Assembly (NCBI GenBank): GCA_965637545.1
Contig: OZ281499.1
Coordinates: forward strand, 25,978,001-26,042,000
Length of the DNA stretch: 64,000 nt
DNA from: Phallusia mammillata
Taxonomy: Eukaryota
Direction of reading: 5' to 3'
Below the pieces are notes generated by a model. The model did not search any database, was not told where the DNA came from, and worked only from the letters and a program-made list of their open reading frames with translations. A program made the position numbers and the translations under genes. Below, piece after piece: positions 6,415-64,000 of the stretch. Positions within the stretch are counted from its first letter, which is position 1. Every line of letters begins with the position of its first letter.

Positions 6415-9118
6415 TGGTAACAATTGTCGGATCTTGTTCAACACCAGGAGCTTGCGAACTATTATGTACGGGAGTCACGTGAGTATCTTTTTAGAGCAAC
6501 AAGTTTTACTTTGTTATGTTAAAATCCAACTGCTAACTGTCAGTCATATTGGGTGTGAAACGTGTACAATATGTTTTGTAATGAAGAAAAATGCAGGGGT
6601 TTGTTATGGAGAGACAATTCATTTAATTTCCACAGAGACACATGTGAAGCAGCATGTTGCAACGACGCCGATAAATGTAATGGTCGAGCAGCTGCAGACA
6701 TAGACGACATTGTAAGGTGTGCGACCGGAACATCAACTGATGCAATCCTGGCTGGCCGCATTACGTGCACAACAACACAACAATGTGGAAGAACCGAAAC
6801 ATCTGTCACAACAGATGGTAAGATCAGTGGCATAAATAACGGTAAAGACTGACTGTCAACGAATATTTTTTTGTTTTTAGGAAACACTGTAGTTACGACT
6901 GAGGGGTCTTGCCAAGACATGGGAGCCTGTGATATTTGCGGTGTCACTGAGTAAGCTTAGTTCAACGAAATGCTTACAAATATTCCAGTTTTGCATTACC
7001 AAAACAGTAGCATAAACGCGTTGCAAGATACTGATATGACTCAAATGGCATGAAACAATTCATGTAATTTTCGGTTGGATTTAACCAGTATATACCTCTG
7101 TCATTTTTTGGCAAAGTCAGCAGTTTAGTCAGATGCAAATTTGTACTAATGTCAAATAGGCCACGTCCTCTTAATCTCCTTATTGTTGTGTTCAGAGGAT
7201 GTGTGGATGCTTGCTGCAACAAAGCTGATTCCTGCAACACTTTGACAGTCGCTGTACAGACCGGCAGAGTTTGTATGGTTGGAACAACTACTACAGTTGG
7301 AAGCAATCCTGCAACGGGAAGTTTAATGGCCACACATTGCCATCCGAATCTTTACTGTGGAAGAACTGAAACCACCACAATAACAGGTGGGAAGTAATAC
7401 AACATATATGTTAACTTTTTGGTGTAATAAACCTTGCAACCAACATGGCTATTGTAGTAATTAATGCAAGGGTGTCCCACCCTCCCCAATATTGGTGTAA
7501 TTCGTGCTTTTTCGATTTTACAGACAGCGTGGACACAATGGTTGTTGTTGGATCATGTCAAGCTTCAGCAGACTCATGCGACTTGCTCTGTGCAGATGAT
7601 TCGTAAGTTTACAAGCTCACACATTCTACAAAAATCAACATGTTCAATAATGCACAATTTCAGAAACTGCGTCCGTGCATGCTGCAACGATGCTGACGGT
7701 TGCAACAGTGTTACGGTTGCTATGATGACAAGCACGCTAATTTGCCATGACGGGACAGTCCCTGGAACAACTTTAACCGCATCAAACCCTTGCACCACAG
7801 CAAACCACGTCTGTGCTAGAACAGAAACGACAACAGGCATTGGAGGTAATAGAAGCTAGAAACACCAAAAAAGCCTGAAACTTCTTTTGCGTTGCCAGTT
7901 TATCCAACAAAACTTTTGAATCTTAAAAATGTCACAGGCTAATAAATGGCTTAACAGTACCAATGCTGGTAACACAAATATTTGTTCCTTTTTTCTGGTC
8001 AAGTTTTTAACTTTATTGATCTGACATTCATGAAGTTATTGAGGCCACAAGAATATTAAAGCACGGGAAAAAATTGTTGGGTACAAAATGTGTGAATTTT
8101 TCAGCAACAGTAATTTTTCGACGTATTTGTTTTAATCTTATGTAATATTTTAAGATTCAGCCACGGTTGAAACCGTTGGATCGTGTCAAGCTCAGACAGA
8201 CTGTGCAACATTGTGTGACTCAGTTGCGTAAGTAAAATCAAAAATTTTCTTTCACTGCTTTGAACAGTGCCTAGTTCGACAAACATTTTTTACTGAGCAA
8301 TGGTTTAAGACGCCCAAACACCATACAACCGACAAGTGCTACTATAATTGTTGATATACTTTTTCCACAGAAACTGTGTGAGTGCTTGCTGCAGCAGTTC
8401 GGATCTCTGCAACAGTTTAACAGTGAGCCAACAAACTGCCCGAAACTGTTACGTTGGAAGTTCAACTTCCGACACACCAGTTATGGATATGACTTATACT
8501 CGGTGCGCTGCATCCGAACAGTGCGGAAGAACTCAAACCTCTGCAACATCTGAAGGTAAACGACAAACTTAGGGAAAGTGTAACACCTCATGATTTACAA
8601 TTGCCTGAAATACAAACCCAGTCAACAGAAAAAGACCATTTATTTTACGGTTAGTTTCTGTTTCACAATAAACAATGCTGTTTATATTCAGGTACAACTA
8701 CAGTAACTACAGTTGGGTCTTGTACAGAAGCAGCCGAATGCGATAACCTGTGTGCAGGGTAAGACCTGGGAAACTAGTTTGCTCCATTCTATTACTTAAC
8801 CGTACATATTTGTTGGGTAAGAGTTTTCGTAGCTTTTTGATTTGAAAGCAATAACATTGAAATTATAGACCGTCTGCTGCTGATTGCGTTTCCACATGTT
8901 GTGATGCTGATGGCTGTAACTCCGAAGTAGTCACGACCACGACAACCACAACTACAACAACAACTACTACTACCACCATCACCACACCACAAGCAACAGC
9001 TACCGCAACAACCACTACAACTACTGCAACAACAACCACAGCTGGTGCTAAACAGGCAGCAGAAATTAATATTATGGTGATGTTGGGTCTCTTGGTTCTC
9101 GGTTGGTTCATGGCTTAG
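6415..9118 (+). CDS. Gene A: multi-LU (three-finger-like) domain, Thr-stalk, GPI-type surface protein; 5' exons missing from window; >=5 domains
   Basis: Exons 6415-6478, 6636-6817, 6881-6950, 7196-7386, 7524-7602, 7664-7845, 8155-8227, 8371-8555, 8692-8758, 8869-9118. All GT-AG and phase-consistent. Repeated CxxxCCxxxxxCN motif, 41-aa Thr stalk, hydrophobic C-terminus GAKQAAEINIMVMLGLLVLGWFMA*. Confidence 0.88.
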
Positions 9119-10156: not shown

Positions 10157-10424
10157 TGTTGCAGCAATGGCACCAACTGCAACATAAAAGCCTGAGTTTC
10201 ACTACAGAGGTAACTCTAGCCAAGTTAAACTACTGAACGCTGAAAATAAAAGCTATGCATTATTAACAGGCACTTTGTCCACTGAAGTTCCCATGAAACA
10301 TTCCCAACATCGTTTGGTTGCTGAAATGACGATTATTCTGACCTGTTACACAACAACAGTGGTTGGCACAACAGTATGCACTATAACAACCTGTGTGTGG
10401 TAGATGGAAAAAGTGAAGCATGAA
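10157..10424 (+). pseudogene. Decayed LU-family exon relics
   Basis: TGT TGC AGC AAT GGC ACC AAC TGC AAC (CCSNGTNCN) at 10157-10183 followed by a stop. LVAEMTIILTCYTTTVVGTTVCTITTC at about 10314-10393 resembles the cluster's linker plus domain start, with a gtaaga donor nearby. Confidence 0.4.
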
Positions 10425-14318: not shown

Positions 14319-14982
14319 CTTCACAATGTTGATCAACAAACTCAACCAATCGGACGACGTTCTACAATTATGAGTTATGTCGTCATGTTTAAATTTTTAA
14401 CAAATCAAAAAACAAGAAAAGCGTACAAAAATATCATGTTTGGTAATAAAAAATAAAATAGCATTCATGCACAAAATAAAACTGCATAAAAAATAATTAG
14501 AAGTGTTACAATGTAAGAATACACAATTTTATGCTGGTCACAAAACGTTGTCGTTAATCGGCATCTGACAGCTTGTCAATTTTGCTTTTTGTAAGTACAA
14601 AACAAGTCAGCATTGTTAAGATGATAACAATAAAAAATATTTGTTTCTTAGTTGTACACAGCTATTCTGGCTGGCTGATAGGTTCCAAACACAGGCTTTG
14701 TGTATCTGCCGGTTGTAACCATGCTGACAACTACAAATAAGGTGAATTACTAGCGATTGGCCAAATAACAAACTCATATCTGCTCGGCTACTTTAAATAG
14801 ATATATTTAACTAGTAAACTGTGTAATCAATTACAAATCAAAGTTTCATGAACTTTATTTGATTCCATTTCCACTTTATTTATTATAAATCCGTAGAGTC
14901 ATGACGTCACTGGAAACGTCAACATATTTTGAATTTTTGAGTGTTTAACTCAACGTTGTTTGACTTCAACTACGGCTCAAAC

Positions 14983-15200: not shown

Positions 15201-16133
15201 TTAAAAAAATAACTGAACTTTATTAACTTTGCCATAAGCCAAAGAGCGGTTCGTGTTAATTATAAACAGTTTCTGGTGTAAACTCTTTGCGAAGCGAAAC
15301 CATCCATGCACAAAGCGACTAAGGTTTGCCACCAATAAAAAAAACAAGTTTTGGGAAATATACTTGTGTTAACAAACGATCGAAATTGTAGCACACTGGC
15401 GAACGTAAACGCAGAGCGAAATCCCCATAAATGTTACCTGATATAACTGGCGTTGTTCACAGCTTGGCATGCAGCTAAGGACGAGACTGCAACGTGAGAA
15501 AATACAACCCGACATGGCTTTCCATAAACACATAATTTAAATTTAATTTACACTCCAAGCCTTTCGTTCAACACAAACGTTCATTCAATCTCGCACACGA
15601 GAACACAGATGTTTGGGTGCGTCTCCTAAACCTCTTGTTTAGGGACAAACGCGGATTTTGCTAGGCTTTGTGCGGAATGTTGGGGAAAATATGTTTTTTG
15701 TCCAGCTTGAAGCAAAATTGTTGCGAATATAACCAAGCTTTACTCTAAACACGAAGTCTTAAATACGATTTAAATTCACTCGCACCCTAAAGTTACACCA
15801 CAGTTCGTTTGAAGGATTTCAGATTACCTCAGTAATCATAAAGTGTCTGAAGTTTACCTAAGATTAGTCTTTAATACAAGCGTTGCGTGGAAAAATCTAA
15901 ACCCTCATTGATAAATGACTAAATGTGTTCATAAATTTGAATCAATAGGCAGAAAGTTTATTATAGTGTTTATTATCCACCAAGCAGCTGGGAGATTCTA
16001 GTTTATGGTTTAAAAAGTATACCCTTTGCAGAGTTGCCTTAGTTTATTTATCCTATAGCCAAGTGGGTTTAAACTTTCACGTTTCGAGTTTTAATTATCG
16101 TTGCAGAAAACAAACAAAACGGTCGGATAAAAA

Positions 16134-19100
16134 ATGAGGGTCGGTTTAGTAGCGCCATTGTTGGTAATGCTGGCATATCCTGGGGTACAACCTGCTCATG
16201 GTTTGGATTGTTTTGTGGGAGATACATCAAGTGACCCTTTGGCAGCAACAACATGTGCCGGCGGCGAACTTTTTTGTGGAAGAACGGAAACTCATATTGG
16301 TAAAGATGCTGTGAACTGACACGTTATCGTTAATTTGTTTGACCATGCAACAATAATATTCCATAAAAACTGTGCTAATACAGACATCGTCCTAAACTGC
16401 ATGGTACACTGTAGGTCTTGTAAGAAATTGATGTGTATAATGTGAAAAAACATTAACAAACACACGATAAAGTGTTTTCTTTAAGTCAATGTGATCACAA
16501 ATTTTGATTTTGTGAATAACAAACTGATCAAAGAAACCGTAATAATGTTTGAAATCAGTGCCCCAAAATTAGGCAAAACCAACTTAACCAGTTTAGGCAC
16601 CGAAAATTCTGTTGGCCAGTGTAATATATTCCAAACTGAAGCTTTCAGTAAACTTAATCAGTCTCTGTTTTTCGTTACAATAAAGAAAGCTTCAGTTTTG
16701 TAAATAATGTTCGTTTTATAAATACATTCACATTTGTAACTAGGAGGAGGAACTTTAGAAATTGTTGGAACTTGTCAAGACACAGTAGCCTCGTGCGATA
16801 ATCTCTGCACCGGAACCGCGTGAGTAGAAAGTTTCAAACTGATGTAGAAAGTATCCGCAAATAAATATACATACCACATTTTAGTATTTAATTTACTTTA
16901 AACAACCGCCTGTGCAGAGAATGTGTTTCTGCATGCTGCAACGACCAAGATAATTGCCACCAAAAGTCTGTAACGGACATAAACAGAATAATTCAGTGTG
17001 GAATTGGGGACCTGATCAGTGAAGGAACGTTTGCTATGACTGCCGAGTGTGCAGTTGAAGAACTTTGCGGGAGAATTAGTATTGCTGGTAAATACTTTGT
17101 TATGTCGCCCTTGTGTGGGTACGCCAAATGTTGTAGTAAGATTAGGTCTGCAACTTGCCTGGATGGTCCGGAGCGCCTGATCCACACGCAGACATAAAAA
17201 AAACTTACCGGGATTCGTCCGCGGGAGCGCCATGAGTTCTATGGGTTTCAACATGCTTATAACTTATAGTTTGTTTGTTTTTCTTATAGATGCAGCGCGT
17301 TTTCCATCTTTTCGCCAATTGCGCCCTCTACTTTGTCGCGTTTTAAACGTCTCAACGTTTTGCAGCTATTTTCAGCGTGGTGAACATTTTAGGTCAATTG
17401 TGCTGCTAAGGTCTGTTTCACCCGGCGAAATAAACTCAACTCGATATCGTAAAAAAGATTATACTGCACCTTAAACGTGGCAGTCACGTAGGTTAGCCCT
17501 GTGCGTTTATAACAGTAAAAATGGATCTCTTTAAAACCATTAAACAATGTAGAAAAACAAACTTCTTCTTAATCGAGGCTATTTATTTTTAATTGAAACC
17601 CTTTCACAATTTGAAAACTACCGCTTTAACGTTCAACAAAACGTCTTTTTAATTGTATGCTTTACTGGAGAAAAGTTTTGCTGAGCCCAATAGTTTTTCT
17701 GCATGTGATAAACGGATTTCAACCTTCCTTGTATATAGGTTCTGACACTGGGTCGTGTTCAACAATTGCTCAATGTGATGAAAACTGTGTCGGGATATCG
17801 TAAGTACAAAGCTGAAAAAAATTCTATGTCTTACAAAAAACCGTCTGTTTAAAATTTGATGCATGTTTAAGGGATTGTACATCTGCGTGGTGCAATAACG
17901 CTGACCAATGCAATGTCCAATCAGTTGATCAAATGAGAGCCATATTAATGTGTGGAACTGGAACTTTATCTGGCGGAGTGTTTCCAACGACAACCACTTG
18001 CGGCGCTAACGAGCTTTGCGGAAGAACGGAAACTCAAATTGGAGGAAGTAAGTTTTGATGCAAAATAGGTTATGTTGATTTTTGTAGTGCGCTGGTTTTG
18101 AAACGTAATGCATCCAAACTAATCTTTTAACCAGTAACATGCCGCGGAGGGGGAGTAAGTTTGAACTTAATTTAATTTGCAGCCACAACTACTGTTGGAT
18201 CGTGTTCAACGCAAGTTGCCTGCAATGAGCTCTGTGTCGGTACGACGTAAGTATAAGAAACTTAGCGTTACGAATTGCAGTAGATTTGTAGTTGTTAAAG
18301 TAGACATAAACATTTACGTTTAACAAAAAAAGCAAATGGTAACTGTTTTGCAATTTTTCGCTGGACTTTATGAGATTTAATGTTGTTAGGGACGCATGTG
18401 TATCGGCATGTTGTAATGATGGCGACAACTGCAACACTCGGACAGTGGAAGAAATGAAAAACATTGTTCGATGTGGAACTGGAGTTTATCCGGGAGGTGT
18501 TTTAGAGACTTGTCAAGCTGGTTGGTTTTGTTCGAGAAGAGAAATTGGAAGCAATGTGTTTCTCCTAACCACGATAGATAATTTACTGTATAAGTGCATT
18601 TAGTTGATGGTAAGTTGTCTGATCATTAGATGATATCTGGTCTTAAGTGTGTAAAGTCTAGATCACTAACCGACCACTTGTTGGTCACAAAACAAAAGCA
18701 ATTTGTCTTTTTGGGGGTAGGAAGTTGGCAAAAAGGTGTAGGGGCGAGGACCCATACGCGGAAAATGGTTAAATTACACGACACATTTTAATTAGTGTTT
18801 GGATTTACTTTAAAAAAAACTTTTGCTTTTGTTGAGTCATAACAAAAAGGTTCCTCCAATAGACGTGCCAGAGGTTTCGTGTCAAAATGCTGCCGGATGC
18901 AATGTGCTGTGTGAAAACGAACTGTAAGTATTATTTCCATGAGTAAAGCAAAGTGCAATTTGAAAATAATGACGAGGCTTTTGTAATTGTTGTGGTATTC
19001 CTGTATACAACAGGCATTGCGCATCGGCATGCTGCAACAACGCTGACGGCTGCAACAGTTTGTCAGTCTCCGAACTTTCTGGCAGAGTATGTATGGTTGG

Positions 19101-20512
19101 AACAATCACCACAATTGGAAGCAATCCTGCAACTGGAACTTTGTTGGCAACAGATTGCAGCTCAGACACATTTTGTGGCAGAACTGAAACTACCACAACA
19201 GAAAGTAACTAAAAAAAATAATTTTATATTCAGCCACAGTTATAACAGTTGGATCGTGTCAAGCACAGAGCTCATGCGCGACACTGTGTGGCTCAACTCA
19301 GTAAGTTTTTAAATGCATTTTTTTAATTAAACTTTTGTTTGAGTTTCAATTAAATTAATTTCAATGTATACTTTTCGAACAGAAATTGTGTCAGTGCTTG
19401 CTGCAGCATATCGGATCTCTGCAACATTTTAACAGTGAGCCAACAAACAGCCCGAAACTGTTACGTTGGAAGTTCAACTTCAGACACACCAGTTATGGAT
19501 ATGACTTACACCCGGTGCGCTGCATCCGAACAGTGCGGAAGAACTCAAACCTCTAGCACATCTGGAGGTAATTACGTTTGTAAATTGGAGCAAAAACCAA
19601 AACTTAAGTTGCCCCAGCACATTCTAATGCAGTAGTTTTAGAACAAAATTAAATTATAGTTAGGAGCCATCCTATAACGCAGGGTTGCGTAGTTATACTT
19701 GGTGAAATCGTAGCTTTTTGAGGTGAATTCATTCCTAATATTTGCAGCGAATTTAACTTTAATCCAATTTTATCCAAAAAATACACCTTTAAAATGTGCC
19801 AGGGCACACAACAGCTTTGTTTTTAAATCAATCGACTTAAATTAAGTGGAATTGTAAATTTTGTACCAAATCCACAACAGTGGTATAATGTTTACAAGAA
19901 AACTCAGCTTTACTTGTTTAGGTACAACAACAGTGACTACTGTTGGATCTTGTATTGCATCAACAGAATGTGACACTCTCTGTGGAACGTAAGTTTAATA
20001 ACCATTACTACGTTGCAGTTAAGTTGAGCGTTGTAACTTGCTTCTTATTTGAGAAATTGAATATAGATTGTCATCTTGCTCTGACCAAACCACACTTTTA
20101 CTGACAAATAATTCTCAAAGCAAAAAACATAAAAAGTTCTCAGGGAAGTAAAAGTATTTGACAAGTAAGTTGATACGTTTTTAGTACGATCGACAGGGAT
20201 TAGATTTCACGCAATCAAAGAGGCGTTTGTTGAATGAGAGTACACATAACAGACTGGGCCTTTGGCTACACGCCAAATAACTACTGGTGTAATATTTCTC
20301 CCTTTCATAGGAACCCTGGCTGTGTTTCCACATGCTGTGATACTGATGGATGTAACTCACAACCTGTCTCAACTACAACCACCACCACTACAACAACCAC
20401 TGCTACAACCACTACAACAACTGTAACCACCACATCTGGTGCTGAACATGCAGCACAACTAAATATGTTGGTGATGATGGGTCTTGTGGTTCTCGGTTGC
20501 TTCATGGCTTAA
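16134..20512 (+). CDS. Gene B: signal peptide + 6 LU-like domains + Thr stalk + GPI tail; carries several lesions (possible pseudogene)
   Basis: Exons 16134-16299 (MRVGLVAPLLVMLAYPGVQPAHG-LDCFVG), 16744-16819, 16918-17087, 17739-17799, 17872-18047, 18183-18246, 18390-about 18553 (GT donor absent), 18863-18923, 19014-19204, 19234-19300, 19383-19567, 19922-19988, 20311-20512. Cys-to-Trp at 17888-17890; 29-nt intron at 19205-19233. Confidence 0.8.
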
Positions 20513-22083
20513 TCGATGTGTTTCCAAAGCATCAGCATTACTGTGTTTGTGTGATTTAGAGAATATATATCCAAGTTTGTTTATAATCTTTAGATTTTGT
20601 ACTACAGTATACACAGTTATTATGTTGTTGCATTTGCATGTACTCTTTCGCACATATTGTAATACAGTGTTTGTATAATAAACTAATGCTTTGTGCAACT
20701 TCAACCCTAGTGCGCAAACGTTCACGTTATTTGATTTTGGGTTCTTGGTACGTTGTTTTCGCGCGCACGATCTCTTGTTGATGAACGAAACCAAGTTTTT
20801 GACATTTTACTGCAATTTCTACTGTTTTCTGTTTTAGAGAAGCATAAATGCAAAAGTATTTACGTTTCATCAATAAAAAATTAATACATATAAAAACGTC
20901 AAAGTCCTTTTAAACAACAAAAAATAATGCATACAAAAGTCTTCAGGTCCCAATAAACGCAATGCAGAAAAATATTCCCATAGAAGGATGACTAAAACAC
21001 ATTTTCCATTAAACGCAACGTATCAAATTATGTCCAAATGTTTATACGCTACTGTAGTGATTCTCAGACTGTGTGCTGCGGAACGCTAGTTCGCCGCCAC
21101 AGATTTCCAAGTGTTACGCGAAATATTCGATTTTTAAAATTTTAAACATTTTCTGAGGTTTTAGTACATGACAAAATGCGGGCAAGTATAAGAACGTTTA
21201 ATTGCTCGTCTCTTTACTATTTCTTATAAAAAGCTTCCCACCCACCACAATAAAGTTGCAACTTTCTTTTGGGTCCTTGACATACAAGGTGTACAGCGGA
21301 ATGATAATCGTCTTTGTTAATGCACCGTAAGGTAAAAAAAAACTTGGGAAATAACTGTTTTACAACTCTACATAAACTTGTTAAAATCGCTATGGTGTTA
21401 AAATCCATTATTCAATTCAACGTAGTACAAGACTCACAATAAGATTTAAATCTTTTGTTAGCACTTCCCCCACTCAAGTCGTTCTCAAACACAAAGCACG
21501 AGAATCATAGAACACCATGTTTTCGTGAAGTGCTCGCGTGGCAGACGGCTTCAAGTTACCACGCTTTCTTCGCCTTAGTAAGTCCTTTTAGAAATCTTTT
21601 TACCACATTTCTTCAGAGCGCTCAGATTGCTTTCTTCGTTTACATCCCTCCATTCATTCTTAGTTGACTTAAAAGATTAGACAACAGTAGAACATGGTGA
21701 CGAATACCAAACACACGAAAGACAGTGGGATTAATTTTTTTGTATAGTTTTTTGTTCCGTCTTTGGGCTATTTAAAAATCAATCTAATATTAAGTTTAAT
21801 ATCTATGGCGCCCAGTAGTCTGTTCGCTACTTCCATAGTAACCAATGTTCTACAAACACAACTCATATCTTGCAAAGTTTTAAAAATAATAAACTTATTA
21901 GCACTACAGAATAAATGCGCCAAATAATAAACAAGCGAAAATTACGACGGCCGTGTAAAGTTAAAGCAAAAGGCTTTTATTTAAAAAAAAGTATTTAGAT
22001 TTTCGGGGTTTGACAGGTCGCATTCCGCTGCTCACATATTAAAATGTATTAGTTCAATGAAAAGACACCAGCAGTATCTAAGT

Positions 22084-48415: not shown

Positions 48416-48652
48416 AATTGAAGTAAACTGGAGCCCAACACCAGCAACGACAAAATCACGAGAAAAACGCCGATCCTCACCGCACACCACTAGTCAACAC
48501 GTGGAAACGATCCCTGAAAAATTTCTAATGGCGCTGTGCGAGAGAAAAAGTTTTGGGGTAATCAGACTCCCTTGAAAGAGTCGGGACGCTACAATGTAGT
48601 GAATATAAGGAGGGAACTGCCACGTTTTTGTGCAGTTGGGTTTGAGTTTACG
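48416..48652 (+). promoter_or_regulatory. Core promoter plus micro first exon of gene E
   Basis: CACGTG 48498, TATAAG 48604, gcAgtt with A at 48634 (30 nt), donor gtgaag 48653, acceptor atag 49434. Confidence 0.72.
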
Positions 48653-49504: not shown

Positions 49505-52500
49505 ATGTCTTTCGCTGGAGCAATAGCCGTGTTTGTCGCACTTCTGTGCGGCGTTGCGAATGGTTTGGATTGTCGCATAGGAACAATGACCCAGGATGGG
49601 TCAGATCCCACAGTTGGATCGTTTGTAACTGCAACTTGCCCAACTGACTATCAATGCTCAAGAACTCAAACAACTGCAGGTGTTTACATGTATATCATTT
49701 GTTAGCTGAAAACATACTAGCCATGTGTTTAACTGTTGCGCAACTCAAATTTATTTCAGGTACCGTCGTCACGACCGTGGCATCATGTTCTACATTCTCT
49801 GCTTGCGACAATCTTTGCCTTGGTGTAACGTAAGTTTGTGAAAAATAAAATCAGAAAAGAGATTAAGACGGATGTAAACATAAATCACTTTACTGTGCTA
49901 TTATGAAGTACTTTTTTAAAGTATACGCTATGGTTGCAGAGATTGTGTTGGAGCTTGCTGCAAAAATGCGGACAACTGCAACAATGATCCGGTGGCTACT
50001 ATGATTGGAACTGTCGACTGCATTACCGTCTTTGCGGCAACTACAAGCACAGAATGTTCACCTGGCGAAATGTGCGGAATAAAGGAAGTTACTGCAGGTA
50101 ATACTGGAGACTAGGGCGATTTTTCTTGTAAACATTACCGCTTGTTATACTTTTAGTCAATGGAGACGTAACATCCACAAGCACATGCTCAACTGCAACA
50201 GCGTGTACTACTGGTCTGTGTGACGGTGAAGCCCTGTAAGTAAGCAATACGTTATTACTCAACATTGTGCTGCAAAATACAACGTAAAATATATACGGCC
50301 GATTTAAGTAAATAAACTGATGGTCAACAATATTTGTTTGTGTAAATCTCAAGCGTTTGAGGACAAATCTTAACATCAACATTCAAGTCAAGAACGGCGT
50401 GCTTAATCATAGTGATTTTTTTAGTTTACTTTTAAACTCATTTCCACAGCGCGTGTGCAGCAGCGTGCTGCAACAACGCAGATGACTGTAACAATCAAGC
50501 AGCAGCAAATGTAGGCTTCCTCTCCTGTATTGGAGCCAGTGGATCTGAGGTTTGCACTGCTGGACAAGTTTGCGCCAAGAAAGAAGTTACTCCTGCTGGA
50601 GGTGAGTAACGAACAAGAGATGTGTTGGATAAGAATAAAGCACTTCAATAAAATCGGTGGACACATAATACATGATAATTATTGACTTCTATTTTTAACT
50701 AGAAAGGAGGTTTCTGACATACTTCCATTGTATGTATTCCATACGATATTTACCAATTTACTATACACATCATTTAATCTACACATATGATTGTTTTTGC
50801 AAGCAAAAACGAATGACCCCCCCCCTCCCCCCTCCCGAATGAGTCCCGATTTGTGCGGATTTACGGTAAACAAACGTCCTGGTTATTTTTAGATTCTTAA
50901 GGAAAAACTTAAGCAACTTTAGCAATAACCCAAACTTCAGCAATAACCCAAGTTTTATCAGTATTCTTTTTGCATCATTATTGTCATATAATTACAAACA
51001 ACAATGAATAGGAACAGGAAAAATACTTTCAATTTAATCTCATGCTTTGACCTAGATATTGTCGTTGCAGGTCAGTTTTTAAACACAATTTTCCAAAACT
51101 GAAAATGTGCTTGATAACTTAATAAAACGACATAGCATAGCTGCGCAAAAACAGCTCATTTCTGATCACCGACACGATTGTCTCGTAAAATGTCCGTCCG
51201 GACGTCAAGCTGAGCACGCCCTGCATTCGCCCACCTTAATCGTAAACAAGTGAATTACTCCCTTGAGAGTTGAGACTTATATCTGACTGACAATGTACAC
51301 ATCATGGCCTGTAAAAGTAACTATTTGGTCGATTGAGGCAAAATTTTAAATACTAAACGAATAACCTACTGCAATCAACTGTTTAACAGTTCAGAACATT
51401 AAGGCTTGAATTTCTGGGCCAAAACTTATTATTTTGGGGTTTAAGGGATAGGATAAAAATGGGTTTATCCAATAAAAAGTTACAAAATTCTTTAGAATAC
51501 CTTACATTGCACCAATCAACAAAGCATGAAACTCTCAGATTATGTATTTGGGTCAGTACAGCCGTTTAAAAAAAACACGTTTTGAGGGCCCGTGGGTGGA
51601 CCGCTGGGTCATTCGGGGTCAAACTTCTGGAGGATCATATTTGGATTAATAACTAACATCTGTCTAAATTTGAAGCACTCTTTCTTGACCAAACGCGTAT
51701 AACAAACCAGCGTCGGACAGAAAAAATACAGACAAAAACAATACCTTCGTGGAAGGGGACACATAATGACTAGTTTTAGCCAAAAAAATAACTTGTTTTA
51801 ACGTTTTACAGGGTCGACTACAACCACAGCCTCGTGTCAGGATCAAAATGCATGCGCCGGACTATGCACTGGTGAAACGTAAGTCAACATGAACCTTTAC
51901 AACCAACTTGGACGCTTAATACAATATTTCGCTTTTTCGTGTAGGGATCCATGTGTGTCAGCTTGTTGCTCGAACGCTGACGATTGCAACTCGGGAACCG
52001 TTGCTGAGATTACGGCCGCAAACGCGCTGAGAGTTTGTATGGTGGGAACTTTTACCCAGGATGGGTCGGCAGCTGCTTCTGGAGTGCTGACGTTTACGAT
52101 TTGCACGGCTAACCAGATTTGTGGAAGAACCGAAACGACAGGTAAGAAAATGTAAACCTGATGGTGTATTACAATTTCACCACTGCATTTATATTGAGAA
52201 AGAAACATCTCTTTAAGTTTTATTAAGCCAAATCTTTTTAAACAATTTTTCTTGTGCCAAACAAAAATTTCAATTAAGGTTTTTAATCTCTTGAATGTGC
52301 GTTTCAAAAGGTATAAGCCATATTTTCACCAGCGTTATGAAATAAAATTTACGTTATAACACAGAATATTTGAACAAAACAGTCAACTGAGTATGTGCTT
52401 ATGTGTTGTAAAGATTGTTGTTTTATCGGCCTTGTTTTGAAAAGCACAAATGTTTTTAACGCCAAGTAAACGCGATAATAAACATACTTGCTGTTTTTAG

Positions 52501-55500
52501 ATGGTACAGTTGTGACAACAATGGGATCATGTCAAGATTCTGTCGCCACTTGTGACGCTCTTTGTGCAGACACCGCGTAAGTTTTTGAATATGCATTGGT
52601 CCGATGCAACAATTCAACAATAATTCAATACTATGCATCATGCTAAATTTATCATAATTTCTGTTAAAACCTTTTTTCAAAGCACAGTTTTCAAAGTGTA
52701 GTTGCTCAGTCAAAAAAGTTTGTCCGAGTTTATTTCAGTATTTTTAACATCCATTTTATATTATTCAGGAACTGCGTGTCAGCCTGTTGCAATAACGAAG
52801 ATAACTGCAACAGAGAGTCTGTGGCTGATATGGGAGCAACAATTGCGTGTGGAACTGGAACAATGGCTAATGGAGCGTTTCCTACAAGCACCACTTGCAC
52901 CGCTAACCAGCTTTGCGCGAGGACCGAAATTGGCAATGGTAAAATTTTAAACCGCCCTAATAAAAAGTGAATAAAAATTTACAACATAATGTTAGAAATG
53001 CATTTTCATCGAATACAATAAAAAATGCCCGTGTTGGTAACATGCCCATCACATATCAAAACAAACAAACAAACCGTTTAACATTATTCACTGTAAAAAC
53101 AAAGAATTTGTCTGCAGCTGTGGAGGGATCGTGCCAGACACAAGATGCATGCGATCTACTCTGTGCTGGAGTCGCGTAAGTTGATTTTTTACATTTACCA
53201 ACAGAAAGGTGTGGCATGAAAAGCCACCATTTTCAATGTATCGACCTAATCAAACAAAAGGGGCGTTGTTTGCGGTTTTACATTATAAGAGAAAGGCCAC
53301 GTCTGTTATAGTGGGCTACACACGTAGTTGATCGTGTGCACGTCAAACTAGCAAAAACTTGTGTCATTTTATTGAAATATTTAAAGTATTATCAAGCGCT
53401 TTAACAGCAGTTATAATATTCATTTGGCACACACACACAAAATTAAATATTGTAACTTGTTATTTCGCTAACTCCCAGAAAAAATGGAAGTCAAATATAT
53501 ATATCAAATATAAGCTTTCAGGGTTTTTGTTTATTTCCTATCACAGGGGTTGTACATCAGCATGTTGTAATGATGCCGATAACTGCAACACTCGGACTGT
53601 GGCACAAATGCAAATGGTTGTTCGATGTGGAACTGGGTCTGCAACAGATGGAAACCTCCCTAACACAATGACTTGTGCATCTGGTCAACAATGCCAAAGA
53701 ACTGAAACCACTGCAAGTATGAAGTATTGCATTTTATAGTCGGTCGCGTTCATTACATGATTGACATCGGAATTATTATTGCAGGTAACGTTGTTACAAC
53801 TGTTGGAATGTGCATTGCTGGAGATGCCACGTGTGGAACTGGATGCGCTGCAGCGTAAGTTAAAAAGCACAAGCTTAAAGCTAAATTTAAGCTACAATTA
53901 ACCACCCGAAGCATAAACGTGGAGAAAAAAAATCAAAGAAAACGTGTAACGAGTTCGCACATTATTGTGGTCGTCAGTTCAAATAATAATGTCTTATACA
54001 CGCACAAGAAATCATTTTTGTTCAAGTACAGATCTTTAATGTCCTTAAATATTGTTCTTGTTTTTGCAGGGATTGCGTGTCAGCTTGTTGCAACGACGCA
54101 GATGGATGTAACACTCTGTCAGTGGCAACACAAACAGCAAGACAATGTTTGACTGGAATGACCACCCAAGTTGGAAGTGCAGCAGCAACTGGAAGTTTGA
54201 TTGCTACGCATTGCCCCGCTGGTGAAATGTGTGGAAGAAAACAAACCACAACCACAAGTGGAGGTAGACTGCCGTACAATGTACCAACATCTTAAACCAG
54301 TGCTCTTCAACCTTTTTTGTCTTGGTGAACCCCTAAACTTGTTGTGACGAACTCATGCACCCTGTTTACTTAAAAAGGTTAACTGAGATAAAAGCGATAT
54401 TAAAAATCATTATGCGTATCATCATGTCAATCAAACGGAGCGGAGATCGCAAAAATTGTTTAATTGCTACCAATACTCCAGCATATGTTCGCGAATTTTC
54501 TGTAAAACACCGGAGAAAAGGCCAAAACTCGATGTCCTAATACAGCGGTTCCCAAACTGGGGTCCGCGGTCCCTTAGAGGTCCGTGAGGCAATTTGGGGG
54601 GACCGCGAAGCGCTTGAAGTAGTTCTATAATCTTATTTGGCGTCAGTTTGTGCTTCTAAATCACTTTAAAATCAAAGTAGAATTGAGAATCGACTGCCTC
54701 CATTGCTAAACAATGGCCTTTATAGAATGACAACTATCAAAAATGCAATTGTTCGCGCACAATCGTAATGTTTTTGTCCTGTTTGTGATGTCACATGCTG
54801 TCTTTGAATGATTGTTATGCGCAATTTTGCATAACTGGCTAAAATCCTGCAATCAACTTTCGTTTTTATGAAATACACATTTAGGCTTAAGGCACGCGAG
54901 CCCTCGAAATAATGGCAAAGGGACCGTTTTGAGAAAAATATGAAAAAGTTTGGGAACCACTGTCCTAATATAATCCGACTGTAACGCAGACACGATCAAA
55001 CTTGACACGGGGATAAAACATTAAAAAAGTTCACCTTGGTTCACATCACATGAAACCTACGTCATTTTTCTAATATCCTCACAGTCAAATATTAATGGTT
55101 CGTTAAAAGTTTGTGATGCACCCTTGTATACCCCTTCGTACTGGTGCACCCCATGCACATTTTGTGTGTTCAAAGACAAACACAAGTTTAACCACCCATG
55201 TTAGAAGTGTGTTCAAGAAGTTTAAAATTGTGCATATATTTCTGCCTGCAAAAAAGTAATCAAACTAAAAAATCGCAAATACATATAATCTACACCATTG
55301 GATCGCAATACACACCAGGGGATGAGTACGACAATAACATCATTTTACGTATGTTTAGATGTGGCTACAGTGGTAACAGTTGGATCTTGCAGCACAGCAG
55401 CCGAATGTAACGATGGAAACATGCTTTGCAATGGGTGAGTTGGGAGGTTATGCACGCAATTCACCGCCTATTAGTCGTTCAAACAAAATCGGATGCCTAA

Positions 55501-55784
55501 CAGATACTTATATCATACCAAAGCTAAAATAGCTTAAAACAAAACAAACAAATTATTGCAAAATGGTGACAAAGTGTTTCTTATGCAGGGCTGCAGGTTG
55601 CATCGAATATTGCTGTGACACTGATGGTTGCAACTCTGCCGTTGTCACTACAACAACAACCACCACCACTACTACAACCACAACAACAACTGCAGCAACC
55701 ACCACAGCTGGTGCTGAACATGCAGCACAAATTAATATGTTGGTGATGATGGGTCTTGTGGTTCTCGGTTGGTTCATGGCCTAA
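49505..55784 (+). CDS. Gene E: signal peptide + 7 LU-like domains + Thr stalk + GPI tail, intact
   Basis: Exons 49505-49679, 49760-49829, 49940-50097, 50157-50235, 50450-50601, 51812-51878, 51945-52141, 52501-52576, 52769-52938, 53118-53175, 53547-53716, 53785-53854, 54070-54263, 55359-55434, 55589-55784. Confidence 0.9.
50697..51767 (+). mobile_element. Probable non-autonomous Helentron/DINE-like insertion in gene E intron
   Basis: Intron is about 1.2 kb versus about 0.1-0.5 kb for most cluster introns. Starts aactagaa; ends acagacaaaaacaata followed by hairpin ccttc-gtg-gaagg and cataat. Confidence 0.5.
54543..54962. mobile_element. hAT MITE (420 bp) in gene E intron, sister of 22084-22493
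   Basis: TIRs cagcggttcccaaact / agtttgggaaccactg; perfect 8-bp TSD tcctaata. Possibly nested in an older hAT-like element starting cagtgctcttcaaccttttt at 54298. Confidence 0.93.
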
Positions 55785-56545
55785 TCGATGTGTTTCCAAT
55801 GCATCAGTATTACTGTGTTTGTGTGATTTAGAGAATATATATCCAACTTTAAACTATTTTTATACGTTGCACATGGATTTCAACCTACTGTGAAGTGTGT
55901 TAATGTAAGCTGTATCTCAGTGTTATAATATATTTGAACTGATTCTGTACATTTCCGAAATGTTAGATTTTGACAATATTAAATACAAGTTTGATAAACA
56001 AATGTCGAGTGTCATGAAAACACCATCTAGTGTTATGACAGTTCTATGGAAAAGGAAACTTACAGAACTCTAAACAAACTTAATTTTATATTCTGGCGGT
56101 CGAGAAACATTTCAAAATACAATGTAGTATTGCGTTATTCGTTTGCACCTAAAAAAGTAAACATAGAAGGTCTTTATCTTTGTGGCAATATGTCTTTAAC
56201 TTTTCCTTGACTTATTCCAAAACAGTTAGGGCAAGTGGCAAACTTAGTCTTGCGTGAAACTTTGACACAAAACCTTTTTTCTGCGTCTGAGCTGGGGTTC
56301 GGGGTCCACGTGTCGTGCCTTCTCAACGTTCACATCAGAAAGCTAAACCAGTACGAGCTGAAACAAAGGTGCCAAGCACAGCAAAAAAAATAACTCCCAA
56401 AAACAAATAATCACTTTTTACGATGAGTATGTAGTTTGGTAATCTTAAATGCCAACAACCAGTGTTGTTTTTCAGGGGAAGAGTGTTATGGATTTCAAAT
56501 ACATATGTGCAGTAAATGTTGTTGATAAATTACTTTATGCCAACG

Positions 56546-56973: not shown

Positions 56974-57223
56974 AATTAAGGTGAATGTGAACAGGAGCGC
57001 AATACCAGTCACGACAAAAACACGAGGAAAAACGCCGATCCTCACCGCACACGACGAGACAACACGTGGAAGCGACCTTTGGAAAATTTCTAATGGCGCT
57101 GAGCGAGAGAAAAAGGAAAAGTTTTGGGGTAATTAGACTCTCTTGAAAGAGTCGGGACGCTTCAATGTAGTGAATATAAGGAGGGGGCTGCCACGTTTAT
57201 GTGCAGTTCGGTTTGAGTTTACG
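56974..57223 (+). promoter_or_regulatory. Core promoter plus micro first exon of gene F
   Basis: CACGTG 57063, GGAAAATTTC 57081, gactc-N8-gagtc, TATAAG 57175, gcAgtt with A at 57205 (30 nt), donor gtgaag 57224, acceptor 58101. Confidence 0.75.
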
Positions 57224-58147
57224 GTGAAGTGGGAAGAGAAAGAAAGTCGACAATTTTTGCGCTTTGGAAGAAAAGGGGAATGTTTAACGGCAAGTCAGTC
57301 CGTAATTACCGGGGGTTTAGCGGTACCGTAGTCGAAAGGACACGATCTTGTTCACATGTGTGTGCCATCTGCCATAGAGCAAGATAAGGAATACGCGTCA
57401 AATTCAAGAGCAAAATTCAGATTTCGGTTGGAAACATCATGTTTTAAAATAATTAAACAATTTAAAACAGCATTCACAAGCACCACAAAAGTCCCAGGTC
57501 ATAATAGAGAAAACAACATGTTACGACACAAAGTTTACAAAGTTTATCAAAACGCCAGCTAAAATTGTTTGCAACTAAAAGTATGGGTCGGGGCAAAGCT
57601 ATGTTGCCAAAAATTTACATCGCCTGTTTTTTTAACGAGGACATCAACTTTGCCTGGTAGCCTTCGAACGGCTCTAACGTGAAAGATCTTCGAACTCTAT
57701 CTCAAATTTGGGCCAAATCGGTAGGTTTGGGAGAAAGAACGTTTACAGGTAAAAAGTAACTAAAACATCTATCGTGTTGCGGGAAGTTACAGATTTAAAC
57801 GTTAAATGGAGTTGGATCGCGTCAAAGAAATAGGTAACCACTGCATTGGTGCTTAAACAGTAAAAAAAATGTAAAACTTTCACGCGAACGAAAGTATACA
57901 TGCAGCAATTATAAGGGAGTAAAAGTGTCTTAAGCTACACTGTAAAATGACACAGAGCAGAAGGCTCGAGTCAATAAAATAACCGCTCAGTGCGTACACG
58001 CCACTGTCCTTTTGAATTATCATCGTTAACTTTATTTGGTCCAGTTAAATTAATGCAAGACCCCAAATAGCAACAAAGCAACTGACCAAATATTGTTACA
58101 GAAACAGTTGGGATTTATTCCATACAACAGTATCTTGAATTATAAAA

Positions 58148-61100
58148 ATGGGTCAATTACGAGCAGTTGCACTGTTAGCGGTTTTCTTTGTGTGTGGCAT
58201 TTCGTTCAGTGATGCTCAAATTACGACATGTTTGGTTGGAACTGGTGTTGGAAGTGCTGTTGGTAATATTGCTCAAGATAACTGTGCAAGCAGCGACTTC
58301 TTTTGCGGACGAACCGAAACAGCGGGTGGTGGTAAGTCGTAGCTTGAGTTAAACTATGATTTGTTTATAAGTGTGTTCGTGCATTTAGAAGTAAAGAAGG
58401 TTGTAATAATAAGATAATTGTAAATCGGCATAACATTAAAAACACAATATATCAATACAAGCGTGCATGTTAATGCTGTGTATGTTTTAGATCCTGTCGG
58501 CTCATGTGTCGCAGATCTGGCGGCTTGCGACGCTCTTTGCGCCGGAATCACGTAAGTAGAAACAAAATCAAAAATGTTCCTAAACTTTTTTCATGGAAAC
58601 TCCGAAATAGACACGTACCTGGTAATGGTGAAGCGCAATTGCTTAGAATTATATGGTCACTGCATGGTAAAACGTTTTGTCTTACTGTATTTGCATGTAA
58701 CTCATTTTTCAGGGGCTGTGTATCTGCTTGCTGCAATGATGCTGTCGACTGCAACACCGGGGTCGCTACAATGCGAGGAACAGTGACATGTGGGGTTGGG
58801 GCAAATACCGGCGCTTTTCAAACCCCTGCAATGGTTTGTGACGCGGGAGATCTCTGTGGGAGGAAGGAAGTGACAGCGACTGATGGCAGTGAGTATGCAT
58901 AGTTGAGAATAAAGCTTTCTTTGGGGCATTAAACATACATGCAGTCTTTGAAGCAAACTATACACTTTTAATCACTTTAAAACGAACGATAACGTTTATG
59001 TAAAAAATTGCTTCAAAACAATAAACGTCAAATTTTAAAAAATACAAAGAACACTACAACATTTTACAGCTGAAACCATCACTGGATCGTGTTCAACTGT
59101 GGCTGAATGTGAAGCACTCTGCGATGGCGAAACGTAAGTTGTGTTTCGTTCTTTACAAACTTTACCCACAATGTGTTAATTGGCGACAAAACTATGTGAA
59201 AAATAACGTCAAGGGTCAGACGACTAAATCTTTTTATGTTTGGGCACGAAAATCCTTAAATTCTGAAACCAGAAATGCAATTGCACGCATATTCAAACTC
59301 AAATAATCGCCACTAATAACATGCAAAGTGTTGTTGTTGCAGGGATGCATGTGTATCGGCATGTTGCAATGATGCTGACACCTGTAATACTCAGACAGTG
59401 GCAGAAATGAGCACCATTGTACGATGTGGATCTGGGACGGACGCTACGGCCGCAATGCTGACTTGTGCATCGGGATCGCTTTGTGGCAGAACGGAAGTTG
59501 ATGGTGGTGGGTATTAATTTTAAAACGGCAATACTAATAATTTAATATTAAAATTAGAATTACTTATTCGCGCTTTTTGAATTCTATAAAGTAAAAATTA
59601 CATTCTGTAAAAGCATTGTGGGATAGCAATGTATGTGACAAATCGATCAATGGTTATTTTGTACGTTAAAACAAAGTGCCAAGCTTTCGCAAAACCTTTT
59701 TACAGGCGCCACAACCGGGAGTTGTTCCACAGCGATGGAGTGCGAGACGCTCTGCGGCAGTACCGAGTAAGTTAAAACGATATAATTATGGTTTATTTCG
59801 TTTTAACTTTTCTCCAAGCTCAGACTTAAAAGGAAAAATTGGTCCTTAAGAAAGACAGGAAAGTGTCACTAACTCTTTATTTGACTTCTCAGAAACTGTG
59901 TATCGGCATGTTGCAATGATGCTGACAACTGCAATACCCGCACAGTGGCACAGATGAGCAACATTGTGCGATGTGGAACTGGTGCAGACGCTACTACAAC
60001 ACTGTTGACTTGCGCAGCTGGATCGCTTTGTGGAAGAAGGGAAGTTACCGGAACAGGTATGGGATTGTTTAGCTTGCTTATATGAAAAGCACTGGTGCCA
60101 TGTTTCAAACATTAACATACATTGACTTTCAAAGTAGATGAAAGTGGACAAGGCAAACAATAGATAAATAATATTCGAAATTGGAACTGGTATAGTTTTA
60201 CATTTACCAGTTTAAAAAATTATAATAACCAACGCGCTTAGAAGCGACTGCAATCTAAAACGCCAGTGCAGCCAACATTTTAAAGTAGGTAAATGTCAAT
60301 GTGCGGATATATTTACCAAAGAACTTGTATCATCTTTCCAACATACTATTTTACACTTCTGAGAATTTTTAAACTAAGTTTGTGTTTTTGCTTAAAGGTT
60401 CAGCAATAACCGGATCATGTTCAACTCAAGCAGAATGCGACGCCCTTTGTGCTGGAACCGCGTAAGTGAGAAAAAGAATTGTTTAAATCAAAATAAAAAC
60501 ATCAAAAATCTATAGCAAGAAATTATAAATTATCGACGAAACTAATTGAAAACAGCAGAAGTGAAGCAACTTTACCATTAGCACAACGAACATAAAAGCG
60601 CATTTTTCTGCGACTAAAAATTACAAAAACCATTTTTTTGTTTCACAGATCTTGCACAGCTGCATGTTGTAACAATGCTGATAATTGTAACGCCCGAACA
60701 GTAGAACAAATGGAAGACAGAATTGTATGTGGAACTGGAACATTAAATGATGGAGCGTTTCCTGCAGCTACGTTTTGCGCCGCCGGGGAACTTTGTGCAA
60801 GGACAGAAACAACATCGGGTTCAAGTGAGTGTCAGATACAACACTTGGTCATAACAACAATCGGTTATTAGTAACCAACACAGGATGCTTACTGCCTAAT
60901 ATCCCGAAGCTGAAAAACAATCTTGGCGCTAGGCGGAGGAAAGGCAACTCATGTGTTACATTGAATTCACATGTTAAACGCTCATAAAAACCGACTTTGC
61001 AAAACACTCACTATAAAGATTAGAATTGTATGCTATAAAGGTACATTGAAGTCAAACGAAACGTCACTACCACGACATCGCCCTCTTGTTTGGAACGTTG

Positions 61101-64000
61101 GCATCTTATTTCATTTTTTAATAAGACATTTCTCTTTTACAGCCACCGCCATTGTCGGATCGTGTCAGACTCAGACAGCATGTGAAGGACTGTGCGACAG
61201 TGATACGTAAGTTATGTGGCTTAAATAACTCACTGGAAGCATAGAAGATTCATCAAACACAAAAATTAGTTCAATCTTTAGCTAATAAATGGGATTAAAA
61301 TAAATGGATAATTACCAACTTTTCTGTAGCGCCGCACATTTAATTTACTTTTTACAGACTACTTCTTGCTGTTTTTCATCACAACATAATATTACAACAA
61401 AAAGTAGTTTATACCTAATCCGTGTACATAACATAGATGAAAACCAATACACACCTTTAAGATAAATATCGACATCACATTATTATCAGGGGCTGTATAT
61501 CGGCTTGCTGCAAGGATGGAGATTATTGCAACACTCAGTCAGTAGCAAATATAGACAACGTGGTTCTGTGTGGGACTGGGTCTGACCCAACAGCGGCATC
61601 GATGACTTGCGCTGCTGGATCGCTATGTGGGCGAACATTAGATGGAAGTAAGAAATAAATCCTGTTGTGGCCTATTAGAAAAGTTTTTTTTTTTACTTTG
61701 ATATATTTTTAGGCACTATTGATGGAAGTTGCTCAACCCAGGATGAATGTGACAGCCTATGTACCGGCACTGCGTAAGTATGGGTCAAAAAATATTCACA
61801 AATTAAATTGTGCTGCAATCAAGCGGCGAAAACCTAGTGCGATTTAGTTATTTGAATTTTGATGCTTATAAATAAAATCAAAAAGGCCCTTAGAAAAAGA
61901 CAACCGAAAGTCAAGTGTGCACTAATTTTGTTGATCTGTGCAATATGTTTCTTGCATTTCGAATTGTATGTTGTCACGTTTCATTTTTTACCTTATCTTA
62001 ATTTAATTTTACAGAACCTGCACGTCAGCATGTTGCAGTGACTCAGACAATTGTAACACCCGAACAGTGGTACAGATTGAAACCAGAATAAGATGTGGAA
62101 CTGGAACTTTAACTGGTGGCGCGTTTCCTACAGCTACCACTTGTGCCGCTAACGAGCTCTGCGCAAGGACAGAAATAACAGGAGGTAAATAAGCCAAACT
62201 TTGTTTAGCCAGCCTACATTTCCTTTAGACATTCTTCCGTTTCGCAAAAAAACTCCCATTAGGGACTTTTTACATGCAACTATGCCTAAAACTGACAACC
62301 ACACACAACAAATTTTCGTCCTGTTTAACTTGTAACCAAATGAAGTTCTATATTGTAAAATACCAAAACTTATTTTCAGGTGCTACAGAAGGATCGTGCA
62401 AGACACAAACTGGATGTAATTTGCTCTGCGCTGGAGTCACGTGAGTGAATTTTTCCACGTATATGAAAATTTCTGCAACTTGTAATAAAAGCTGACATAT
62501 AGTTAGTTATTTTAACTTTCACATTTATCTGGCGTGCATCGTTTTGCTTAACAACCTGCCAGAGTGAAAACATTAAATGTTGGATATATTGCAGGGGTTG
62601 CACATCTGCGTGTTGCAACGACGGAGATTTCTGCAACAGTCTTTCTGTTACGAACATAATAGATGTGGTCCGATGTGGAATTGCGCCTGTAACGAACGGA
62701 GCATTCACTGCAACAATGGTTTGTGCATCTGGTCAAAAATGTCAAAGAACTGAAACAACTTCAGGTATAATCTGTTGCATAAAAATCTTTATCTTCATTC
62801 ATTACATAATTAAAACTGGGTTTATTTTTCAGGCCAAACTGTTACACTTGTTGGTTCATGTATTGCTGGAGATGCCACATGTGGATCTGGATGTACTGCT
62901 CCGTAAGTTTAAAAGCTCTAATGCTATCCAAATTGTTATCATGTCAACTTTAAATTGTCACAAAAAATTGAATCCAGCGTTCGTGACAACAAACAGTTAC
63001 AACTTGGAAGGAAACGGGTAGACAAAATCGCAAAGTCGACAGAATAAGGATATTTTGATTTGCAAACCGTAACATACTGATAGCCAATTAAAATTCGAAC
63101 TTTCTTAACTCGTTCCCTAGTAGGGAAAAGATCCAAACTTTATTTTAGTTTTTATGACTTAGCACTCAGATAAACACTTTTGTTTATTGGTTGCAGGGCT
63201 TGCGTGTCAGCTTGTTGCAACGACGCAGATGGATGTAACACTCTGTCAGTGGCAACACAAATGGCAAGACAATGTTACACTGGAACAACCACCCAAGTTG
63301 GAAGTGCAGCAGCAAATGGAAGTTTGACTGCTGAGCATTGCTCCGCTGGTGAAATGTGTGGAAGAAAACAAACCACAACTACAAATGGAGGTAGATTGCT
63401 GTCACAGTTACAATGCATCAACATCTAAAACTACAAACAACATCAATATACATAAACGCATTCAACCAACGAAGTCGTACATGTATTCGAAATACGCCAA
63501 GAATTTATGCCTGCAAACTGTACGCTTGTCATACAAAGCGTAAACATTACTTAACAACACACAAAATTACAATAGACATGGTGTTTAAGAAGACAATAAT
63601 ATATTTAATTTGTTTAGGTGAGACTACAGTGACAACAGTTGGATCTTGCAGCACAGCAGCTGAATGCAACGATGGAAACATGCTTTGCAATGGGTGAGTT
63701 GGTTATGCAAGCATTTGACCGTCTATTAATCGCCTAAACAAGATGTAGATGCCTATACTAAAAAAATACTCGATACCATGGCGTGCAACATTACAGCACG
63801 ATTATTAATATTGCAATAAGGTGAAAAAATCTTTTGCAGGGCTGCCGGTTGCATCGAATATTGCTGTGACACTGATGGTTGCAACTCTGCCGCTGTCACT
63901 ACAACAACCACAACCACCACTACTACAACCACTACAACAACTGCAACAACCACATCTGGTGCTAAACATGCAGCACAAATTAATATGTTGGTGATGATGG
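58148..64000 (+). CDS. Gene F: signal peptide + 9 LU-like domains + Thr stalk + GPI tail (last codons outside window)
   Basis: Exons 58148-58331, 58491-58551, 58713-58888, 59070-59133, 59343-59506, 59706-59766, 59893-60056, 60398-60461, 60649-60824, 61143-61206, 61490-61647, 61713-61773, 62015-62184, 62380-62440, 62595-62764, 62833-62902, 63197-63390, 63618-63693, 63840->64000. Confidence 0.9.

Follow-up and report, generated by a model that had tools for sequence, protein, structure and literature searches.

What does a row of related cysteine-rich genes in the ascidian Phallusia mammillata encode, and is it a locus for recognition? The genes lie in a 64,000-nucleotide stretch of contig OZ281499.1 (assembly GCA_965637545.1, positions 25,978,001 to 26,042,000, forward strand), which we call the window. 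An earlier note, made from the sequence alone, had described a tandem family of mosaic proteins built from many three-finger (Ly6/uPAR, or LU) domains and proposed it as a candidate diversified recognition system. Our analysis indicates that the locus very probably holds a lineage-restricted tandem family of multi-LU surface proteins with glycosylphosphatidylinositol (GPI) anchors.

Six-frame translation of the window yielded dozens of plus-strand fragments with C-x3-CC-x5-CN and three further cysteines, interleaved with short three-cysteine fragments. The motif C-x3-CC-x4/5-CN occurs 46 times on the plus strand (45 times in genes and once in a pseudogene fragment) and once on the minus strand. 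It did not occur in 50 shuffles. Splice sites were then enumerated and exons were assembled by script. The resulting splice models describe six co-oriented, open plus-strand genes, g1 to g6 (Table 1), with 4.5, 6, 8, 10, 7, and 9 domains. This reproduces exactly the counts given previously (5+, 6, 8, 10, 7, and 9, or 45 domains). The introns have a median length of 161 nt, and phase 1 introns alternate with phase 2 introns without exception. Their donors are GT in 88 of 89 cases and GC in the other, and all 89 acceptors are AG.

The least secure model is that of g2. It uses a weak GC donor at position 18550, the sole non-GT donor of the cluster, and an intron from position 19205 (19205 to 19249) that is 29, 35, or 44 nt long, depending on the acceptor chosen. 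Read-through at either place leads to a stop, so that g2 would either encode a truncated, secreted protein or be a dying gene. Because both the weak donor and the very short intron are needed, g2 may be decaying. Its domain 2 is also the only whole domain without ten cysteines (the eighth, C8, is replaced by tryptophan). A separate promoter for each gene, another part of the original proposal, is putative. Pyrimidine-rich, acceptor-like AG sites lie 36 to 82 nt 5' of the ATG in g2, g4, g5, and g6 (Table 1) and are candidates for introns of the 5' untranslated region (UTR) or for spliced-leader acceptors. g3 differs, with a TATA-like box 107 nt upstream of its start.

Each domain has 61 to 80 residues, with linkers of 11 to 15 residues between neighbors, and the cysteines are spaced as C-x8/21-C-x5-C-x12/20-C-x5-C-x3-C-x5-C-x3-CC-x4/5-C-N. 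The CC-x4/5-C stretch is present in 44 of the 45 domains (one has WC), and asparagine follows C10 in 43 of the 45. Finger I varies from 8 to 21 residues and finger II from 12 to 20, whereas the core spacing is constant. This is not the canonical Ly6/uPAR ten-cysteine pattern with its N-terminal C-x2-C, because C1 and C2 are 8 to 21 residues apart with no inner pair. Compared with the LU consensus (PMC6600238), the finger-I cysteine pair is absent and there is an extra pair in finger III. However, a phase 1 intron lies between C3 and C4 of every domain, which is the canonical finger II place in LU genes (PMC6600238). Finger III is split by an additional phase 2 intron. The domains are not separated by introns, and their borders are inside long exons. 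The signal peptide and the first half-domain share one exon, instead of the canonical arrangement of a separate signal exon and an exon pair per domain. The two-exon repeat unit is offset relative to the domain. Therefore, exchanges of such exon pairs preserve both the reading frame and the cysteine pattern.

The fold was approached with models of domain parts. P0003, a P. mammillata database record from the family (see below), has an AlphaFold model that is confident over residues 72 to 135 (C1 to C6 of one domain) and consists of two long hairpins and a short helix. When it was compared with 48,161 solved chains, all of the 23 best matches were three-finger domains. The best was GPIHBP1 (Z 6.4, root mean square deviation 2.7, 64 aligned residues), and others included CD177, Lynx1, TEX101, snake toxins, CD59, uPAR, and C4.4A. 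An Atlas model of the other half (C2 to C10) gave template modeling (TM) scores of 0.62 to 0.66 to SLURP2-like, cardiotoxin, and BMP-receptor (BMPR) domains. Its ten best named Atlas feature hits were all from one clan, and the first of them, DUF753 clusters (0.80), is treated as a lead only. Foldseek with the P0003 model returned nothing at E < 0.001, and its best row was C4.4A. Pfam (including UPAR_LY6, Toxin_TOLIP, QVR, Activin_recp, and DUF753) gave no meaningful match for the 30 long exons, the first exons, the terminal exon, or P0003, and a PDB sequence search with the split domain pieces found no match. These blank searches are weak evidence, because the queries were only split or permuted pieces of domains. 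Judged by the two partial models, the domain is a three-finger fold (clan CL0117), as had been suggested, but not a canonical Ly6/uPAR member.

Signal peptides and GPI tails were judged by rule of thumb (hydropathy, a small-residue omega site, and a spacer). A hydrophobic, signal-like N-terminus is present in g2 to g6, so that five of the six genes have a signal peptide in the window. At the C-terminus of g1 to g5, a threonine run is followed by a Ser/Ala-Gly-Ala omega-like site, about 24 residues short of the end, and then by 15 hydrophobic residues. Nothing comes after these, neither a charged nor a cytoplasmic tail. Hydropathy is 2.6 to 3.1 at both protein ends, versus at most 2.1 inside. 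This reading of the termini supports the predicted GPI-anchor architecture. The proteins are acidic (isoelectric point, 4.05 to 4.17), with 17.7% threonine, 9% aspartate plus glutamate, and 1.9% phenylalanine, tyrosine, and tryptophan, and there is one N-glycosylation sequon in all six together. Fingers I and II consist of 71% Thr, Gly, Ala, Val, and Ser, with about 2% aromatics, and are poor in basic residues. Such surfaces would resemble a glycosylated acidic coat more than sites for high-specificity binding. A toxin reading was ruled out by the membrane-anchored, multi-domain, acidic chain and by the lack of a sequence match to snake toxins.

We compared the genes with one another by exon-wise and intron-wise nearest neighbors, sliding windows, and triplet tests with permutation. 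g4 resembles g6 over exons 1 to 12 (72 to 92%, several introns too) as far as about position 43305, g3 over exons 13 to 15 (88 to 93%) as far as about 44010, and g1 and g2 over exons 16 to 20 (84 to 96%). Similarly, g6 is g4-like up to about 62670 and g5-like afterwards, with the switch in exon 15. The triplet tests placed breakpoints at 43304 to 43307, 44008 to 44015, and 62667 to 62678 (permutation p 0.001 each), and all three are inside or at the edge of exons. In a tree of the long exons, which has few columns and many open forks, grouping was by module type and no gene formed its own group. g3, g4, and g5 hardly differ in their terminal exons or in about 200 nt of 3' UTR. As judged from their sequences, the mosaics and the grouping by module type show the genes to be different strings from one shared module pool, reshuffled by unequal crossing-over or conversion, with a membrane-proximal tail and 3' UTR that are homogenized. 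The domain shuffling claimed in the earlier note was confirmed by all of these tests.

Tandem birth and death with recombination among paralogues is expected of diversified recognition loci, and it was found here. The genes might form an immune array, in which individual genes or domains, on blood cells or on epithelia, recognize particular microbial or foreign ligands and selection favors shuffling for the new specificities that it creates. The turnover, the mosaic genes, the variable finger lengths over a fixed core spacing, and a median identity of only 44% between domains all agree with this. We estimated nonsynonymous and synonymous divergence (dN and dS) from 12 recent domain pairs, using each domain once and excluding cysteines. 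dN in the fingers (0.170) was twice that in the core (0.088), which also agrees with an immune array. However, dN/dS was 0.55 in fingers I and II (confidence interval, 0.40 to 0.76) versus 0.31 (0.21 to 0.45) elsewhere. By region, it ranged from 0.03 at C7 to C10 up to about 0.5 in the fingers and linkers, and it was below 1 in every region. These values point to purifying selection that is relaxed at the finger tips. Positive selection on a binding surface, as expected of a recognition locus, was not seen in the pooled paralogue dN/dS. Furthermore, the fingers are low in aromatic and basic residues, and a signaling tail is absent. LU genes characteristically expand in tandem within particular lineages (PMC6600238), and tandem expansion is usual for them whatever their function (PMC6600238, PMC4476152). 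Therefore, the proposed diversified recognition system gained no support from the finger dN/dS or from the low-complexity, aromatic-poor finger surfaces, and we consider an immune array somewhat unlikely. A bolder reading would make this a recognition locus that is polymorphic in a solitary ascidian. By recombining exon pairs that are offset from the domains, it would keep creating new strings of three-finger domains, and hybrid forms of the domains themselves, so that individuals would differ in their surface repertoires for microbial or self/non-self recognition. We regard this as doubtful. If true, it would be the three-finger equivalent of diversified receptor families in other invertebrates.

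The selection estimates also bear on a gamete or self/non-self recognition locus, either Bouncer-like or analogous to VC70, a repeat-built ascidian egg-coat protein whose logic the tandem variable repeats resemble. No positive selection was seen in the pooled dN/dS, and a mosaic multi-gene array is ill suited to one-to-one matching. In addition, the Themis genes are the known ascidian self-sterility system, and P. mammillata is solitary and self-fertile, which we also count against this role. Even though Bouncer is a GPI-anchored LU protein required for species-specific fertilization (PMC6600238), a gamete role is highly improbable.

We searched for relatives of the family with a profile of the 30 long exons. 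Among 1.84 billion proteins, it found only two. P0001 and its cluster mate P0003 are P. mammillata records, named "Not1" and "SCO-spondin-like," that probably derive from an embryo transcriptome, so that expression is likely. Neither record has a Pfam match that supports its name, so both names are automatic mislabels. P0003 is joined at three exon junctions as the gene models predict. Per exon, it is 73 to 88% identical to the best exons of the window, and therefore its source is either a diverged allele or a paralogue that lies outside the window. The ends of both records seem to run on into an intron. Another relative, P0002, is encoded on a 1.7-kb contig (L001, run DRR090687; positions 263 to 1683), where three short and three long exons alternate. 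Its protein identity to the family is about 50%, its introns are unalignable, and its modules pair with no single window module in the long-exon tree. Therefore, the family exists in a second organism, presumably another ascidian.

Other searches found nothing further. The profile search detected no relatives among the annotated proteins of other tunicates. When P0003, the exon profile, and the terminal exon were used in word-index searches for homologues, only P0001 came back, although this method is blind to full-length proteins. A full-length member did not turn up under any name, scans of metagenome contigs found no member, and exact look-ups of the window's open reading frames and P0003 on contigs gave no match and no other haplotype. 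Searches of the literature on ascidian, Ciona, Phallusia, or tunicate Ly6, uPAR, or three-finger proteins found no description of the family, and a 2026 survey of invertebrate LU proteins sampled no tunicate (PMC13719153). Thus, the earlier statement that the family is undescribed holds for these sequences. It does not hold for the multi-LU GPI architecture, which has precedent in Drosophila proteins with 2 to 44 domains.

The exon layout retained in the second organism and the purifying selection throughout would fit tissue-specific structural or accessory proteins (in junctions, in the tunic cuticle, or as membrane-protein chaperones; compare Drosophila boudin, crooked, and coiled), with paralogues split by tissue or stage. 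Drosophila Ly6 tandem paralogues did diverge chiefly in expression (PMC4476152). However, boudin, crooked, and coiled are single-domain proteins conserved across insects, whereas the ascidian family has no detectable relatives in the annotated tunicate proteomes, and its domain number and order vary freely. A structural role is therefore unlikely.

The intergenic DNA (Table 1) holds traces of gene loss. One clear pseudogene fragment follows g3; it has lost the terminal acceptor, a cysteine in its short exon, and the GPI tail. This supports birth-and-death turnover. The pseudogenes listed in the earlier note thus come down to this one clear case and some faint exon relics, which suggest older lost copies. 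The g3 3' flank is duplicated in tandem and travels with the pseudogene fragment. A repeat block shared between genes is, from its sequence, a candidate 3' flank or common upstream control element. A BEL/Pao retrotransposon frame is found about 1 kb upstream of the first visible g1 exon; either it lies inside a g1 intron or it truncated g1. Elsewhere, one copy of an element like a miniature inverted-repeat transposable element (MITE) enlarges g5 intron 13, and a tRNA-like match in g3 intron 5 is probably a tRNA-derived short interspersed nuclear element.

Table 1. Features of the window (positions are those of the 64,000-nt stretch)
Feature	Position	Strand	Description
g1	6415-9118	+	10 exons; half domain and 4 whole domains, long Thr stalk, GPI-type tail; 5' part and signal exon absent from window
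g2	16134-20512	+	13 exons, 548 aa; signal peptide, 6 domains, Thr stalk, GPI-type tail
g3	30782-36064	+	17 exons, 714 aa; 8 domains, intact
g4	39564-45441	+	21 exons, 859 aa; 10 domains, intact; three-part mosaic
g5	49505-55784	+	15 exons, 635 aa; 7 domains, intact; two introns grown to 1.1-1.2 kb
g6	58148-64000	+	19 exons, >764 aa; 9 domains; window end cuts inside tail
Recombination breakpoint in g4	43304-43307	+	conserved C7-C10 stretch of long exon; informative sites 56:9 before, 4:54 after
3' UTR stretch, ~200 nt	36065-36270	+	89-94% identical after g3, g4 (45442-45645), and g5 (55785-55988)
Pseudogene fragment	37546-38056	+	copies last three exons of g3 (85-95% DNA identity)
Duplicated g3 3' flank	36247-37376, 38032-39151		~75% identity
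Intergenic repeat block	37014-37349		repeats at 38897-39083, 48339-48680, 56975-57243 (78-87%); between g3/g4, g4/g5, g5/g6
Faint family-exon relics	10317-10394, 14698-14736, 47326-47423		intergenic; last match weak
Acceptor-like sites 5' of ATG	16098-16106, 39508-39515, 49423-49434, 58093-58101		g2, g4, g5, g6
BEL/Pao gag-pol	1-5373	-	DUF1759, Peptidase_A17, integrase; open 1791 codons, runs off window start
MITE-like element, ~420 bp	54537-54962, 22078-22493		17-bp terminal inverted repeats; copies 90% identical
Tandem repeat	46323-46941		~4 copies of 159-bp unit, between g4 and g5
tRNA-like match	32526-32599	-	borderline Rfam match, 29.5 bits; not called by ARAGORN

These relics bear on the idea that the genes are largely redundant copies with one dosage-type function and that their mosaicism is a neutral by-product of recombination-prone repeats. 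The decaying copies, the retrotransposon beside g1, and the weak g2 splice sites would fit, and so would the location of the breakpoints in the best-conserved parts of the exons, which is what homology-driven recombination predicts. However, no fewer than four long genes remain fully intact and keep ten cysteines in each domain, despite synonymous distances of about 0.3 and introns that mostly can no longer be aligned between genes. Redundancy is therefore very unlikely.

By analogy, we tentatively favor a surface coat or barrier, with rather less than even confidence. As read from the gene models, each product is a secreted-pathway protein with a signal peptide, 5 to 10 ten-cysteine beads, a threonine-rich stalk, and a tail of the GPI type, and it has no part in the cytoplasm. 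The stalk, if O-glycosylated, would lift the acidic bead chain (isoelectric point about 4.1) off the membrane. Such a protein would not signal on its own and might act by avidity. It could form a coat or barrier on an epithelium exposed to seawater, binding or repelling microbes or particles with low specificity. Diversity between genes would then come from recombination and relaxed constraint at the finger tips and not from a demonstrated arms race. The functional model is LYPD8, a mucosal barrier protein of the colon that binds flagellated bacteria (PMC5725809). Its LU domain is GPI-anchored and stands on a glycosylated stalk, and the ascidian proteins might also be shed, as LYPD8 is in mammals.

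Several points weigh against this account. LYPD8 has a single, heavily N-glycosylated LU domain and a single gene, unlike the ascidian proteins, and no homology between them was shown. Pooled dN/dS can mask a few positively selected sites, and recombination skews the pairwise rates behind it. As for the fold, the structural Z-scores of the P0003 model are modest though the match list is uniform, because only domain parts and no whole domain were folded. Also, a single-sequence model of a C-terminal half-domain (P0003 residues 1 to 80) had low confidence and no three-finger match. We did not count this against the fold, since the modeled piece lacks strand 1.

No invertebrates are more closely related to vertebrates than the tunicates, whose three-finger repertoire is uncharted; public databases hold this family only as two misnamed fragments. 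The locus shows a chordate building GPI proteins of 5 to 10 domains from a divergent LU domain whose cysteine and exon layout is unusual, and it offers a clean example of module exchange among tandem genes. Its significance would be much greater if population and expression data supported a recognition role, which is at present a hypothesis.

Among known systems, the vertebrate multi-LU proteins uPAR, CD177, C4.4A/LYPD3, Haldisin/LYPD5, and TEX101 share with the ascidian family a signal peptide, tandem LU domains, a GPI anchor, a gene cluster, and the phase 1 intron in finger II, and four of them (CD177, TEX101, C4.4A, and uPAR) were structural matches of the P0003 model. However, they have 2 to 4 domains, not 5 to 10, and they have an exon pair per domain with introns between domains, where the ascidian genes have none between domains and an extra one in finger III. 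They also keep the finger-I 2-3 disulfide that the ascidian domain lacks. Other comparable proteins are LYPD6 and the ectodomains of the type II activin/BMP receptors ACVR2 and BMPR2. These two receptors have lost this disulfide and gained a finger III pair (PMC6600238), which parallels the ascidian ten-cysteine layout, although the ascidian disulfide pairing, expected to be 1-3, 2-4, 5-8, 6-7, and 9-10, is only inferred. In the receptors, a single domain sits on a transmembrane kinase, whereas the ascidian family has neither kinase nor transmembrane segment, and the likeness is probably convergent. Bouncer of the fish egg shares the GPI-anchored three-finger fold, but its single domain, single gene, and known gamete expression are its alone in this comparison. 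The multi-domain Ly6 proteins of Drosophila (2 to 44 domains, with predicted GPI anchors; Hijazi 2009, as reviewed in PMC6600238) and the arthropod DUF753 proteins (PF05444) share GPI chains made only of three-finger domains, clustered genes, and lineage-specific expansion. They differ in cysteine layout and have no sequence match to the ascidian family, and module exchange, present here, is not seen among the Drosophila cluster III and V genes (PMC4476152). Therefore, multi-LU GPI proteins in insects and the clustering and lineage-specific expansion of the fold were already known, whereas the novelty lies in the ascidian family as such, in the layout of its cysteines and exons, and in the demonstrated module exchange.

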